From Thalia democratica (taxonomy: Eukaryota), in contig OZ241826.1 in the NCBI GenBank assembly GCA_965202585.1, forward strand, positions 41,726,001 through 41,790,000: DNA of 64,000 nucleotides. The letters run 5' to 3'. The number at the start of each line of letters is the position of its first letter. Positions within the stretch are counted from its first letter, which is position 1. The notes beneath the pieces were generated by a model. That model was not told where the DNA came from. It made no database searches and was given only the letters and a program-made list of their open reading frames with translations. This document shows, piece after piece, positions 1,435 to 18,609 of this stretch. A program made the position numbers and the translations under genes.

Positions 1435-4400
1435 TAGTGATTTACTGGATCCAAGATCTCGAACCATCCATCTTTTGCTTGGAACCGGATACGGACGGAT
1501 CTTAATTAAAAAAAAAGATCCGGACTCGAATCCAGACGGATCCTAGCTGAATTTTTGCCCGGTCCGGGTTCAGTTAGTTTGGAAAGATCTAAGAACTTTG
1601 TTTTCCGCGATAAGCTTCTTTCAGTTATATAAACTTATATTATAGTGGTTTGAATATGTGATATATATAAAAATAGTCAAGCGAAATAGACTAATTAAAC
1701 TATAGTTAACTAATCATTTTTTCTAAAAATGCAGATACATACAGTAGTTTATCAAAAAGTTATTAAGTTATCATCTTAATTATGACCATTGTTTAATCTA
1801 CTTTTGATGCAAACTTGAAAAAGTTTTTGAGTAGAATATAATTTTTTAGTTTCATTATAATAAATTCAGGGAGATGTGATTTGGTTCTTTTATTTAAATG
1901 TGTACTTAGAAATACGGTTTAGACACGGTTAGGATATTTCAGGATAGTTTTGTAAATTTAACTTTTTAAATTTTAGAAAATATAAGTTCTAGATTTTATC
2001 TTAAGTAAGATTTAGTTGAATTCAGTTTTTCTACTTCAATTCATTGAACTAGATTTCTTAATAAAAAATTGAAATTCAATAGTTTAAAAAAGTTAGAAAA
2101 ATATTTTAAAGTATTTGATAAAACTCAAAATGACTCAGTACAGTTTCATTGACAGAGTAACAAGTCTGTAGAAATATAAGACTAATCATATTGTTTAAAT
2201 ACAAACAATTCTAATTTTTAATGTAATTTGCATGGAAATTTTTCAACGTAAGTGAGGGAGACCCTTGTTATTCAAATTTCATTCTTTACAACGTACACTT
2301 TTACAGCACTTCTTCTTTACCAAAACATTTGAATTGAAAACATCAAAAAGGAATTTCAGAGGCTAACAAATCATCATCATCATCCAATAAAGCAGTCAGC
2401 GATAAATCGTTCCAAACTCCAAAACAAAAGAAGCCATCAGCAATGAACCAAGCTAGTATGGAGAGTTATTGCCCTTTTTAACAATGGAAAATAAACGATC
2501 AAAAAGCAACCAAAATTTATAAAAAAAATAATGAGTATGATTACTCTGGACAACCAACCATTTTTAAGTACTAGCGATCAAAGTTTCATAGACATGTTGG
2601 CTGCATTAGAGCAAAGTAATTTGATTCCAAGGTACTTCACTAGTACAATGCTTTTTCAGACTTATGAAAATTTTAAGATTAAAATACAATTTGCTATAAA
2701 AAATTTCCGTATCTTAGCTTGTAGAATGCTGATAAACAAGTTTTGATTAAAATTTTAACAATGAAAAATATAATTTTACGAAACGTTTTGTTCATTCTTG
2801 TACCCTAAAACACACATAACAACTCTATATTTTATTACATATTTTATACAAATAATTACACAAAACTTATTAATTTAATAAATTAATTTATTAACCCTGT
2901 TTATCAAAAAATTCTAAAGTACTTTGGGGGAACTTATTTTCTGCATTAATTTTTGACACATCTACTAGCTTGTACATGGCTCGAAAGTATTTAGTTTTTT
3001 TTTATTTAAAATCTAAAAATGCTCAAAGTAATTTATTTCTAAAAGAAAAAAAAGAAAATATTTAACACTTTTTGTAAAAAGTTCTTTTGAAAACTTTGTA
3101 AAATTAGTTTAAAATTTATGTTGAGTTGTTGAATGGTAACAAGAGACTATAAAAAAAATATTAGACTTTTTTACAATGTGCATATGTAATGGGAACATGT
3201 CAAATATGCACTAAGAAACTTTTGCAAGAAGGGTCAAATATGCACGAGGAGACAATTTTGCACGAAAGTACATTATTGCACAAAGAAATTTTTTGTATTA
3301 AGTTACTTTTGCACGTGAGTAAAAAAATTGATAAAAAAAAATAAATAAAAAACACAAAACGATACATTAATAATAATAAAATAAGTTACCGACCGACTGT
3401 AACAAATAGGCATAACAGCGATTGTACAAATAAAGTATAAAGATTACTAATAAAAGTTATAGATAAAAAGTAAAAAAAATAAAATAAATTAGGTGAATAA
3501 AAAAAAAAAAAAAAAGTTACCCATCGAGTTTAAGGGTTAGGGGTAAAAGTGGTAGTAAAAATTAAGATATAATAACACAAAAAAACTAAGCTTATAAAAA
3601 AAAGACAGAAACTAAATAAATTTATAAATAAACAAAAAATAAGAAAAAAGTTACCGACCGAGGGAGAGGGTTAACAGTTATAGAAAAAAAAAGATTAATA
3701 AAATGATAAAATTGAATTAAAAAGATTAAACTAATAACAATACTTCGACCCGTGCAAAAGTGACCCTTCGTGCAAAGTTGGAGACGTGCAAAAATGTCCC
3801 TTCGTGCAAAAGTCTCCCTAAGTACATATCTCCTACCCATATACAATAGAACTAATTTTTTATAGTTGGTACTAAAATTAAAATAAAATAACTATATTAT
3901 GAGATTAATCACAAAATCTTTACAATAATACAAATACAGACAACGGAATGTAGATATCATTTGTAATACAAACTTAATGTAAGAAACTTAAGATCTTATA
4001 CTTTTCAGCTTTTATGTAATTAAGGTAGCCACAGAGTTACTCAAGCATTTTATTTTAAGTTAAAACAAATATACTTTTATCCGGTTTTTATAACCCTTTA
4101 TTTTTAGCTTTAATTCAACTCAGCTTTTAAGAAACTTTGAAGTGAAGTATACTAAAACAATTTAGACAGGGTTGCCAATTTTTTACAGAAATTTCTTTCA
4201 GGTTTTCTGAATTTCTTCCTGGTTTTTAAAAGTACACATTTTTGAGTCTAATTTTAGTTTAAAGCTAAGTATTATAACAACATTGGAAAGATACTGTAAA
4301 GCTACTTTAAAAATGATTAAAAAAAATTATAATGACAAAACTTATAACATTTTACTACTTAACATGTAAACAATTGTTTAAATTTCCAGTTTTTTCCAGG

Positions 4401-14600: not shown

Positions 14601-15413
14601 ATTTTCCTGGATTTTATTAGAACTTCTTAAAAGCGGCGAAGCGTTGCAGAAAGTCGAGCAGGAAATAGAAATTGTTTTTAAAAGTTTGTAATTAACAACA
14701 AAACCGTTTTTAATTTTTGTTTGAGATTTTCTTTTAATTGTTTAAAGAGTTTCTTTATACTTTAAGTGCTTCACAGGCACAGTTGTCACAACTTTTATTT
14801 TGTTCTCATGTTTCAATGTATATTTCAAGTATTAGGCTACTTTTTGTAATAAATGTTCACCGGTTACATATAGTTTTTACGTGAAAACATAAATTTATAA
14901 AAGATTAATATAATGTTAATTCAAACAGACAATAATGACTACTTCGACAAGGACTTGTATTCAGAACTCCATTACTGCAAAGCTGTAATCGAGGAGGGGC
15001 TCAGATTGCGACCCATCGCCCCCACCGTCACCCCTCACTTCACCACCCAACATTCCACGTTGCTGGGCTACCACGTCCCCAAAGACACCAACATCCAGCC
15101 CAACCTGTGGTCCGTTCACAGGGACCCCGTGTTCTGGTCGCCCGACCCAGACAGCTTCAGACCCGGTAGACATTTGGACGAAAACGGTCGGTTCGCCCCA
15201 ACTGGCAGGGTGCTGACGTTTGGATTGGGGAGGAGGCAGTGCGGAGGGTACAAGCTGGCCAAGCAGGTCATTATGACGTCACTGGTTAACTTGATGGCCC
15301 ACTTTCATATAAGGACTGCCGACGGGGTGGTTGCTAGGGATTTGGGGGAGGGTACCTCCGTTCTTATTTACACTCCGCCAATGTTTGAAGTCGTTCTCAC
15401 ACCTCGTCATTAG
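10676..15413 (+). CDS. Cytochrome P450, clan 2 (CYP1-like), 7 coding exons, about 471 aa
   Basis: Exons 10676-10872, 11136-11314, 12301-12422, 13216-13361, 13703-13821 (3' boundary uncertain), 14516-14683, 14929-15413. Phases match at GT-AG junctions except exon 5/6, which needs a GC donor or a mini-exon. Motifs: PGPxxWPIFGSL, YGDIYQVKVG...VVVNGYNAVK, STMANV, I-helix GGTQT, K-helix EGLR, heme FGLGRRQCGG. Confidence 0.93.
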
Positions 15414-16268
15414 TTTTTGCACTCGTTCTGTTTGGTCGAACTTGTTTTTACTTTTTTATGAGCAAAAAAAAAAATTGTTTGAGTAACCTTTATTTCTATT
15501 TATAGAACATTTGGTTTACAATAAGCTTAAACAATTCTTGAATATGACTTCATTAATTTTAATTTATACTGTTATTTGTTTGCAATAAGTTTTTAGAAAA
15601 CTAGAATTTTACTACTATAAAAGATTCAAAGAACGATATTTTTATTTGTAGCCAAAAGTTGATATAACAATTCAGCTTTTTTTACTATTAACAAAGTACA
15701 AGTTCCTGTTAGTTTTTATTGTTTAAATTTTCTAAATACTTTATTTGGTTTTTTATTTTGCGAATAAATTTATTACTTTACCCTTTTAAATTATACTTTG
15801 ACAAAAGTTTTATTTTGATTGATTATGTGATGGTTAATTGAAATTTTTGGTTTAATAAAATACAGAAAACACTTATTTGTTAAAAAGTTGCAAAAATGCA
15901 AAAAGTAATCAAAAAAAAGTTTTACAAAATCATTTAGTTATTTTAGATTTAAAAAGGAATTACTAAATTATACTACATAATAATTTTTTTTATTCAATTG
16001 AAGTAATTCTTTAAAGTATAGGCTCCAAATAATATTTTAAACAACTATGTTAAAATTATGAAAACTTGCCTTAAAGCACTCAAAAGCTGAGGAGGTTTTT
16101 AACATATAAACAAAAACGTAATGATATTTTTTTTTAATTGATTTAATCTAAGATAATTTTTCAACAAAATCGGCGAAAGTCTGCAGAACAAGTCCGGACT
16201 TTCGTTTGCCGTGAGACAAGCTCAAATTTAACAAAAGAGTTGATCATGCCAATTCGATCATCAGACCA

Positions 16269-16339
16269 CAAGTTTCGGTAGTCTGAGACCGGTTTCGTCC
16301 TTATTAGGACTCATCAGTCAGTCACAACCGAAAAACTTG
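16269..16339 (-). ncRNA. Type I hammerhead ribozyme, copy 1
   Basis: Minus strand: CAAGUUUUUCGGUUGU-GACUGA-CUGAUGA-GUCC-UAAUAA-GGAC-GAA-AC-CG-GUC/UCAGAC-UACCGAAACUUG. Intact core, G10.1-C11.1, GUC triplet (cleavage between 16287 and 16286), extended stem I with one A-A mismatch. Confidence 0.88.
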
Positions 16340-16596
16340 TAGTCGTCAATCTACAAACGGTTTGTCATGCTTTCGCATGAAGCAACCATTTGCTGGCAAT
16401 GATTAGTGACGTCAGTATTGTCTTTGCCGTGCAACGTTTAAAACATTGTCCACTAGGCAAGACATCTGGTACGCTCGTTTTAGTACAATCAACAAAATCG
16501 GCGAAAGTCTGCAGAACAAGTCCGGACTTTCGTTTGCCGTGAGACAAGCTCAAACTTAACAAAAGAGTTGATCATGCCAATTCGATCATCAGACCA

Positions 16597-16667
16597 CAAG
16601 TTTCGGTAGACTGAGACCGGTTTCGTCCTTATTAGGACTCATCAGTCAGTCACAACCGAAAAACTTG
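16597..16667 (-). ncRNA. Type I hammerhead ribozyme, copy 2
   Basis: Same as copy 1 but with a perfect 6-bp proximal stem I (GACUGA/UCAGUC). Predicted cleavage between 16615 and 16614. Confidence 0.92.
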
Positions 16668-18609
16668 ATCGAATTGGCATGATCAACTCTTTTCTTAAGA
16701 TAATTTTTATTAAAGTTTTGACTATCATTATTGTTTATTTTTCTTAAATTTAAGAGAAAAGTTGCATAATCATTATATTGATTCTGTAGAACTTCTTTAC
16801 TATTTTATATCGTACTTTAAATAAATATAAAGTAATGTTTTAATTTTTGCAAACTTGAATATCTAAACTATTTAAATGTGAGGTTAAGAAAATAGAATTA
16901 ACTTGAAAAATTAGTTTTTATTTCCAGTTTTAGTTCAAAAGCTATTAAAACGCCTTTGTTTAAGCATGAAAATAATAAACGAAAATAAGAAAAATTACTT
17001 TCTATAAGATTGTAATATGTATAAAGAAAATTACTACTTCAGCTTTAAAAAAATACTTTTTCGTAAAAGTTTTCTTAAAGTTTTTATTGCAGTTTCAAAT
17101 TAAGTATTACATTATAAATAATTAAGTTTAAAGATCTAAATTAAAATGTTGTTCTAAATATTCTTCTAAATGTTGTTCTAAACTTATTTTCATATCTTAT
17201 TCATACGTTTTTATTTTTGACACTATATTTGAATAATCTTCAACTAGTTTAAAGTAGCTGTAATAAATTTCTGAACATGTTTTACTAAATCTAGGGTAGA
17301 ATTTTACTTTATCTTTTGTTTATCAAATAAGTAAAACAAGTATAAAAGCATAATAACGTTATTTAACTATTATTTAAAAGTTTTTTTTTAAATAAAAGTA
17401 CTTAATATAGTACTACACTCTAAATTTAATATAAATTTTAAATTTATTATATACCTGGAAAACTTTTATAATTCTTACAAAAAATTAAATAACAATTTTT
17501 TTTTAATGTTTCAAATTAAAACAATTTTAAATAACTTAATGAAGCTTTAATGAAGTTTTAATGACATTTGAAATCAATTTAAAATATTGCAACATAATAT
17601 GTTACCGAACACCGTTGTAATTTGTAGAAACATGTATCTGTTACCATGTGCATTTATGTTTTATTCACGCCAATTCAAACATAATTTTTTTATCTACAAT
17701 GCAAATAACGTGTCTATTGTCAAACTACGACTGAGAGTCTTTTTATTTAATCTTTGTCATAAAATTTTGTTATTTTTTGTAATTCTTAGTGATATAAAAC
17801 ATAAAAAAAAAACTAAAGAAAAGTTATATAAATAAAAGGTAATTAGTACTCTATAAACTATAATGATACAAGTATTATAAGAGATATTATAAAACATAAT
17901 ATAAAAGTATTAAACTTTAAAATGTACCAGCAAATGTTAAAATACTATATCACGATACTGACTTGTAGACTTGAGGTATTGAATAAATAAAGTAAGCAAC
18001 TACTAAAGTAAAATTTTGATAGATTTTACACAAGCCTAATAAGATAGCTAGGTTTTAGTTTTTTTTTTATCAAGGTATTTGAATAAAACCTGAAGAAAAC
18101 AGCTGAGTCTTGTTTTGCTTTTAATACCTTGCTATTTTGTCGTATAGCTCATGGTTAGGTTTTGTTATGTTTTACAAATGCTCTTTCAGCACTTTTTAGG
18201 CACTTTAGATAGATTTTAATTGGTAGTTGCTAACAATATAAAAAACTTGTGTTTATAATTGAAAAGTATGTTTTAGGAGAAAAGCGTTGTTGTAAAATAT
18301 TTTAAAGAAAATAGATTTAATGGGTGCGCATCTTATTTATATTTTGTTCTTTTTTGTAGTACTTTTTTAAAAAGAACTCTTTGAAACTGTTTAACACAGA
18401 TAAACATACATCAGTTAAATATATAAAAGTACTGTGTAAATTTATGTTAGTACTAGTAGTATACTTTGTACATTTATGTATTTAAACTAACCTAAAGTGA
18501 TTTTTTAAAATTCAAACTTGCATGTGCGCTATAGAAAACATATGCATAACACTTAGTCGTGTGCAGCTATTTTTTGGTTTAAAAAATTGAGCAGTTTGAT
18601 ATCTCAAAG

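Follow-up and report, generated by a model that had tools for sequence, protein, structure and literature searches.

A family of 328-nt retrozymes carries insertion scars of the Penelope type

Introduction

How does a retroelement that encodes no protein find the machinery that inserts it? Animal retrozymes without long terminal repeats (LTRs) were described in 2020 by Cervera and de la Pena and include the HHR_Amex1 repeats of newt and axolotl, with a unit of ~330 bp (PMC7229834). According to a review from the same year, animal retrozyme repeats are devoid of a motif that would reveal the mobilising retrotransposon (PMC7761336). A 2026 preprint ties vertebrate retrozymes to Penelope-like elements (PLEs) by co-occurrence and by homology to pseudo-LTRs. 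The question of the mobiliser is raised again by an insertion at positions 16162-16695 of a 64,000-nt stretch of contig OZ241826.1 (assembly GCA_965202585.1, positions 41,726,001 to 41,790,000), henceforth termed the window. An earlier, sequence-only reading of the window had recognised here a young retrozyme-like element with a self-cleaving hammerhead ribozyme in each copy of a short tandem unit.

Here, we combine the anatomy of this insertion with the scars left by its relatives across the genome and with those of resident PLEs. We conclude that 16162-16695 is a non-autonomous, non-coding retroelement, i.e., an animal non-LTR retrozyme, that was very probably inserted by a PLE enzyme via target-primed reverse transcription. 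Penelope-type mobilisation is favoured because the retrozyme and the resident PLEs share duplications of 13 bp, arms that stand head to head, and a tail of ~70 nt on one side only.

Anatomy of the insertion

All coordinates are window positions, and the unit is numbered from the predicted cleavage site of its ribozyme, such that position 1 corresponds to window 16614. The insertion comprises the following parts.

16162-16695: whole insertion, 534 bp between perfect 13-bp target-site duplications
16149-16161: left target-site duplication, 13 bp, TAAGATAATTTTT, an exact direct repeat
16696-16708: right target-site duplication, TAAGATAATTTTT, 100% identical to the left copy
16162-16667, minus strand: main arm in ribozyme sense, with unit 276-328, a full unit 1-328 and then 1-125 (from the direct repeat, BLAST of the unit and refined ends)
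16668-16695, plus strand: short inverted 5' arm, unit ~29-56 in the opposite orientation (from inverted repeats, BLAST and variant comparison)
16162-16232, minus strand: tail, unit ~55-125, present only at this end of the insertion (median termini 126 and 54 in 37 insertions)

In tandem, the insertion contains 1.55 copies of a non-coding unit of 328 nt. The stretches 16161-16339 and 16489-16667 are direct repeats of 179 nt, spaced 328 nt apart and 99% identical, with mismatches at 16227/16555 and 16282/16610, and the longest open reading frames (ORFs) within the insertion span 65 and 50 aa. Tandem Repeats Finder did not report the array, because only ~1.6 copies are present. The sequence-only reading had arrived at the same picture of 1.5 tandem non-coding copies with two mismatches, flanked by a 13-bp duplication that here proved perfect. 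Its extent for the insertion, 16162-16695, likewise held, but it had overlooked that a piece of the unit recurs in inverted form over the final 28 bp (16668-16695). These ~28 nt form the part inside the element of a longer inverted repeat, in which 16666-16699 copies 16555-16588 over 34 nt at 97% identity, and the short arm is joined to the main arm via a 2-nt overlap. Because the inverted arm has a rare T at unit position 49 in common with the full unit and the partial copy, all three pieces derive from one source.

Neither an LTR nor poly(A) is present in the insertion. Instead of LTRs, the termini are internal positions of the unit, reading ...GAUUUUGUUGA and ...CUUUUGUU, with the duplication following directly after each. 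The 3' end of the main arm, at 16162, is a long terminus (coined 'A') that bears the tail, whereas the short inverted arm ends at ~16695 in a short terminus ('B') without it. The tail holds a 12-nt palindrome, AAGTCCGGACTT, flanked by two UUUUGUU heptamers. GC content is 43% in the element versus 27% in its flanks.

Insertion scars across the family

Forty independent insertions of the family were mapped from loci of the searched genome (802 Mb in 1,833 contigs). Target-site duplications of 10-17 bp accompany 37 of the 40, most commonly with a length of 13 bp (18 insertions) or 14 bp (10 insertions). In 30 of the 40, two arms stand head to head with their ribozyme-sense 3' ends pointing outward. 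Because the inner junction differs in every one of these 30, the two-armed insertions are separate events and not copies of a single rearranged master.

The outer ends are non-random, falling either at A (unit 122-132, median 126) or at B (45-68, median 54). An A end is combined with a B end in 28 of the 29 two-armed insertions with a mapped duplication; the remaining one combines A (126) with position 23. Pairs of the type A/A or B/B are absent (0/29), an outcome with a chance of ~2e-9 if the two arms chose their ends freely. Each two-armed insertion carries one one-sided tail of 72 nt (unit ~55-126), and the window's copy, with A at 16162 and B at ~16695, obeys the same rule. Single-armed insertions use both ends, five at A and three at B among the eight with a mapped duplication, and five at each among ten when judged by BLAST coordinates. 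Arms carry up to 4.4 consecutive 328-nt units and, in the 40 insertions, never an ORF.

Two features of sequence lie close to these ends. The heptamer UUUUGUU occurs at unit 51-57 and 118-124 (window 16230-16236 and 16163-16169, plus the repeats), and each of the family's two 3' termini is located at it or immediately past it; a hairpin with the palindrome AAGUCCGGACUU stands between the two heptamers. Together, heptamers and hairpin may act as a recognition or start module, with offsets to the two termini that differ by a few nucleotides. At the target, the duplication starts with T in 24 of 37 sites, and the two preceding positions are A or C in 26 and 28 of the 37, a preference that constitutes a weak motif at one of the two nicks.

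Resident Penelope-like elements

The genome contains 136 matches to the GIY-YIG domain, often arranged as inverted pairs and many of them in open frames of 400-964 aa. Among these, two PLE families were characterised, each with 96-100% protein identity between copies. Family 1 (locus L043 at G000:C7:24116000-24125999, L047 and L053) consists of 3,580-bp tandem units with an open 964-aa ORF, and its copies are 99-100% identical. The ORF encodes an RVT_1 domain followed by a C-terminal GIY-YIG match that scores 21.1 bits, compared with a Pfam cut-off of 22.6. All three clean insertions of this family show 13-bp duplications. Locus L052 (G000:C4:44935500-44944000) was left out of the scar count: its flanks are mutual reverse complements, as would result from a large palindromic duplication or from a fault in assembly. 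Some 170 nt ahead of the family 1 ORF, inspection by eye tentatively pointed to a minimal hammerhead-like motif with a palindromic AGUACU; a search of three PLE loci with the Rfam hammerhead models gave no match at E up to 1.

Family 2 (L044, L045 and L048-L051) contains an ORF of ~918 aa without a Pfam match at E 0.01 and occurs mostly as head-to-head pairs. Three of its two-armed insertions bear a tail of ~70 nt on one arm only, and a fourth was seen by its tail-less left end; duplications of 13 bp were found in the two insertions inspected by eye. The earlier proposal that autonomous retroelements mobilise the retrozyme is in keeping with the presence of resident PLEs with long ORFs, and the scars narrow it to Penelope-type machinery specifically. 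Several things are observed directly: how the window's copy is built, to which family it belongs, what scars the insertions left, and that PLEs with matching scars reside in the same genome.

This correspondence agrees with what is known of Penelope integration. Among the hallmarks described for PLEs and not seen with long interspersed nuclear elements (LINEs) are partial tandems, a neighbouring copy that is inverted and 5'-truncated, and a tail of 30-40 bp that often occurs at one end only (PMC8557442). The sole PLE protein purified to date acts on both DNA strands, each of which it nicks and extends. Its reverse transcription begins at two internal positions of the RNA without homology to the target, and the tail is the stretch between these positions (PMC11167929).

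The hammerhead ribozyme and its predicted RNA

Each copy of the unit contains a hammerhead ribozyme on the minus strand, and the two predicted cuts delimit one unit.

16593-16663, minus strand: hammerhead copy 1, full-model match to Rfam Hammerhead_HH9 (38.8 bits, E 3.4e-8), predicted cut after C at 16615 (16615/16614)
16265-16335, minus strand: hammerhead copy 2, full-model match to Rfam Hammerhead_HH9 (35.0 bits, E 5.8e-7), predicted cut after C at 16287 (16287/16286)
16287-16614, minus strand: predicted 328-nt monomer between both cleavage sites, taken from the covariance-model alignment

As the sequence-only reading had proposed, both ribozymes are intact and of type I: the covariance-model alignment shows a CUGAUGA...GAAA core and a GUC preceding the predicted cut in each. 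Helix I comprises 6 bp, a UAC bulge and a long extension, with an A.A mismatch at 16282 in the downstream copy (16265-16335), and helix II comprises 4 bp and a 6-nt loop. Because helix III consists of A-CCGG-U alone, i.e., a single A-U pair around a palindromic CCGG, it is unable to close as a hairpin within one molecule, and self-cleavage would probably require the pairing of two ribozymes. The hammerheads of newt and axolotl retrozymes cleave efficiently only as dimers (PMC7229834). The predicted monomer RNA folds at -108.1 kcal/mol (z -4.9 versus shuffles); as a circle it has a predicted fold of -102.8 kcal/mol with 69% of its bases paired.

In two DNA-like sequencing runs, a G-to-A change at window 16624, a CpG site that corresponds to core nucleotide G12, accounts for ~8-10% of the k-mer depth. 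Such a change is expected to inactivate the ribozyme and fits the decay of older genomic copies.

A model for the insertion

The model that we propose starts from a PLE enzyme, a reverse transcriptase fused to a GIY-YIG nickase, that would nick the two strands of an AT-rich target at a distance of 13 bp. The plus strand would prime with its 3' end at internal site A (unit ~126) of a ribozyme-sense RNA, and synthesis of complementary DNA (cDNA) would continue across a full unit as far as position 276. The minus strand would prime with its 3' end at a second internal site, B (~54), 72 nt upstream, from which only ~28 nt would be made. Joining of the two cDNAs head to head through the 2-nt overlap, followed by gap filling, would yield the 13-bp duplication. 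As for the source of the RNA, transcripts of the array would cut themselves at the GUC sites, probably as ribozyme pairs, to release 328-nt linear RNAs that a host transfer RNA ligase could circularise. The order of priming, the cleavage, the circularisation and the identity of the partner PLE family are the parts of this model that we infer.

The strict pairing of A with B invites a further reading, to which we give less credence than to its opposite: Penelope-type integration might be one concerted reaction, in which a dimeric enzyme on one RNA segment primes both nicked strands at fixed sites 72 nt apart. Should this be true, the clusters of 5' ends described below would suggest RNA templates with discrete 5' ends, linear multimeric or end-joined, in place of free-running circles.

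Template RNA

The 5' ends of the arms are unevenly distributed along the unit. Nearly half of them (32/70) fall in unit 271-328 plus 1-3, within the ribozyme or just past it in the direction of reverse transcription (P 2e-7), and seven of the 70, including the window's main arm at 276, cluster at 273-279 (P 7e-4). Only four of the 70 lie within 2-3 nt of the predicted cut (P 0.02). An apparent pile-up at unit position 1 (13/70), considered as run-off at cleaved RNA, proved to be largely a query-start artefact, as most of these arms run 1-16 nt further; the broader clustering is unaffected. Several inner junctions are located on the ACCGGU palindrome, one of them forming a perfect palindrome, which suggests that two cDNAs annealed there. 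Overall, free circles explain the 5'-end data no better than linear multimeric RNAs with discrete ends do. Units within one insertion differ mostly by singletons, which do not separate a circular from a multimeric template.

Contigs assembled from one marine metatranscriptome run cover 16288-16644 at 97-100% identity, one of them across the cleavage site and none in the flanks, which fits a circle or a tandem multimer. A 358-nt contig from a second library equals the unit plus 30 nt, the length that a closed cycle would be expected to give with 31-letter words, again in keeping with either form; this library is labelled RNA-Seq, and its status as RNA is a guess. All these contigs may derive from RNA of the family or from DNA carried over into the libraries.

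Size, age and relatives of the family

The 31-nt ribozyme core occurs at 3,492 sites in the genome with at most two mismatches, in equal numbers for both orientations, whereas a reversed control gave none. At the level of the unit, at least 192 scored matches of 96-100% identity were obtained among 2,264 first-look candidates; the copy-number search that the earlier reading had called for thus returned matches across the genome. In a sample of 64 full units, which leans toward close relatives of the query, the mean distance from the majority sequence is 0.9 differences per 328 nt; this majority sequence served only to measure divergence, and the window's unit departs from it at four positions. 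By these counts, the family comprises ~3,500 dispersed copies and appears young, as had been surmised from the window.

A related subfamily, noticed from loose ends at window 16321 and 16649, combines the same ribozyme end with another body (GCATAGTCGCGAGAAACCG...) and is found at 1,327 sites. Shares of 0.46-0.85 of the element's 31-letter words were detected in sequencing runs labelled as five different organisms and in marine metatranscriptomes of two studies. Either several related species have the retrozyme family, or the labels are synonyms. A 16-nt ascidian-type spliced leader, used as a lead only, was found at 1,299 dispersed sites, compared with 9 for its reversed control, which fits a tunicate genome with many spliced-leader genes or with retro-inserted trans-spliced RNAs. 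The searchable literature holds no description of a retrozyme family in tunicates; one ascidian genome paper does no more than list nine loci with type I hammerheads. It is thus plausible that the family is undescribed in the tunicate lineage.

The window's copy itself lies antisense to and 749 bp downstream of the stop codon of a cytochrome P450 gene, in agreement with the ~750 bp noted earlier. As an item of genome annotation it is an ordinary copy, one of thousands.

14913-15413, plus strand: last exon of a cytochrome P450 (context), Pfam p450, E 2.7e-37, profile positions 315-453 of 462

Alternative explanations

One alternative is an element akin to a short interspersed nuclear element that is moved by a LINE, of the L1 or the stringent type, with the 5' inversion arising through ordinary twin priming. 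L1 too shows 13-14-bp duplications and 5' inversions, and the plus-strand primer at the window's insertion ends in TTTTT just before A, resembling an L1 endonuclease site. LINE machinery is disfavoured by termini that bear neither poly(A) nor a microsatellite; no search was made for a LINE with the same 3' end. The second primer of L1 twin priming anneals at internal sites that vary, whereas here two fixed internal 3' termini 72 nt apart, one per arm, recur in 28 of 29 two-armed insertions, and the resident PLE families display the same one-sided tail and 13-bp duplication. We therefore regard LINE mobilisation as quite unlikely. Slightly less so, though still improbable, is that the copies are fragments, namely solo pseudo-LTRs, derived from a larger autonomous PLE of which no ORF-bearing copy was sampled. 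Hammerheads and a tandem arrangement are also found in PLE pseudo-LTRs, the retrozymes of Xenopus have homology to pseudo-LTRs, and the related subfamily with the same ribozyme end and another body at 1,327 sites could be accommodated by such an origin. This explanation is difficult to reconcile with arms of up to 4.4 consecutive units that never include an ORF in 40 insertions, with the lack of similarity to the PLE loci compared, and with a 328-nt unit that is its own tandem period. Least probable of all, to the point of being very hard to sustain, is satellite DNA in which the ribozyme is a passenger and which multiplied as DNA, through unequal exchange or through extrachromosomal circles that reinserted. 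A tandem layout with a head-to-head arm would be expected of it, and the newt hammerhead repeats were first described as satellite DNA, but thousands of dispersed short insertions with defined termini and their own 10-17-bp duplications are not.

Several observations weigh against insertion of the retrozyme by a PLE enzyme, or against parts of this account. The 328-nt unit has no significant BLAST match to 23 PLE loci, which comprise both characterised families and the 12 best GIY-YIG loci, with at least one other GIY-YIG group outside this set, and the start sites of both PLE families are not obviously like those of the retrozyme in sequence. At gathering thresholds, Rfam matches nothing anywhere in the window: the hammerheads emerge only in an E-value search restricted to the region, and their 38.8 and 35.0 bits remain below the gathering score of 52 (clan CL00010), mainly because the helix III loop is deleted. 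The conserved core of this clan (CUGANGA, GAAA and cleavage after UH) is nevertheless present together with helices I and II. Minimum free energy folding of the isolated ribozyme, either single or as a pair, favours an inactive alternative pairing over the catalytic fold, a kind of prediction to which we would attach no weight in either direction. The RNA evidence consists of contigs only, and DNA carry-over from thousands of genomic copies would look alike. Lastly, the search for an empty site that the sequence-only reading had suggested came back without one. The assembly contains no empty-site allele and no second copy of the left flank, and no joint that skips the element is among those shown for two DNA-like runs. 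Both filled-site junctions are present in these two runs, labelled as two organisms, with flank differences of at most 1%. The insertion is thus common to the samples, and recent activity at 16162-16695 is consequently judged from sequence identity alone.

Comparison with known systems

Animal non-LTR retrozymes are a kind known since 2020, and 16162-16695 clearly belongs to it and is not a new kind: the repeat has one type I hammerhead and falls within the usual unit size of ~150-450 bp with a GC content below 50%, LTR, primer-binding site and polypurine tract are absent, and the duplications exceed 4 bp. With its 328-nt non-coding tandem, a type I hammerhead in each copy, the 13-bp duplication, the absence of an LTR and dispersed young copies, the element bears out the original assignment as a retrozyme. 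Similarity to the newt and axolotl HHR_Amex1 repeats extends further. Both are non-coding tandem units of a few hundred nt with GC below 50%, type I hammerheads with a UAC-bulged helix I and a loop 2, duplications above 4 bp and strongly self-paired predicted RNAs, and both share their genome with PLEs. In both, helix III is down to one base pair under a palindromic tetraloop, an arrangement that renders cleavage dependent on dimers in amphibians. They differ in that the present family belongs to a probable tunicate lineage, lacks sequence similarity outside the ribozyme core, and forms dispersed short insertions (0.1-4 units per arm) instead of very large arrays; the 328-nt circle is here a prediction only.

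Canonical PLEs, which carry a C-terminal GIY-YIG domain, and their non-autonomous derivatives share with the family partial tandems, an inverted 5'-truncated copy, a tail at one end, two internal starts of reverse transcription, AT-rich targets and an associated hammerhead. Unlike PLEs, the retrozyme has no ORF, a tail of 72 nt versus the 30-40 bp reported, a full type I hammerhead versus the minimal PLE variant, and no homology to a resident pseudo-LTR among the PLE loci compared. Plant LTR retrozymes are likewise non-autonomous and hammerhead-bounded, and they too are supposed to spread through circular RNA, yet their type III hammerheads, LTRs, primer-binding site, polypurine tract, 4-bp duplications and Ty3/Gypsy machinery are all absent here.

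Insertion scars make the link between retrozymes and PLEs directly readable in this genome. The 2026 preprint that ties the two together does not mention the tail, and inverted repeats figure there only in a cited title. With our data, the range of retrozymes also comes to include a probable tunicate. The family offers an abundant, young template of only 328 nt whose start sites are mapped, and it would suit in vitro study of the poorly understood integration of Penelope elements. If this integration were indeed concerted, the 328-nt retrozyme would be the smallest natural template with everything that the reaction needs.

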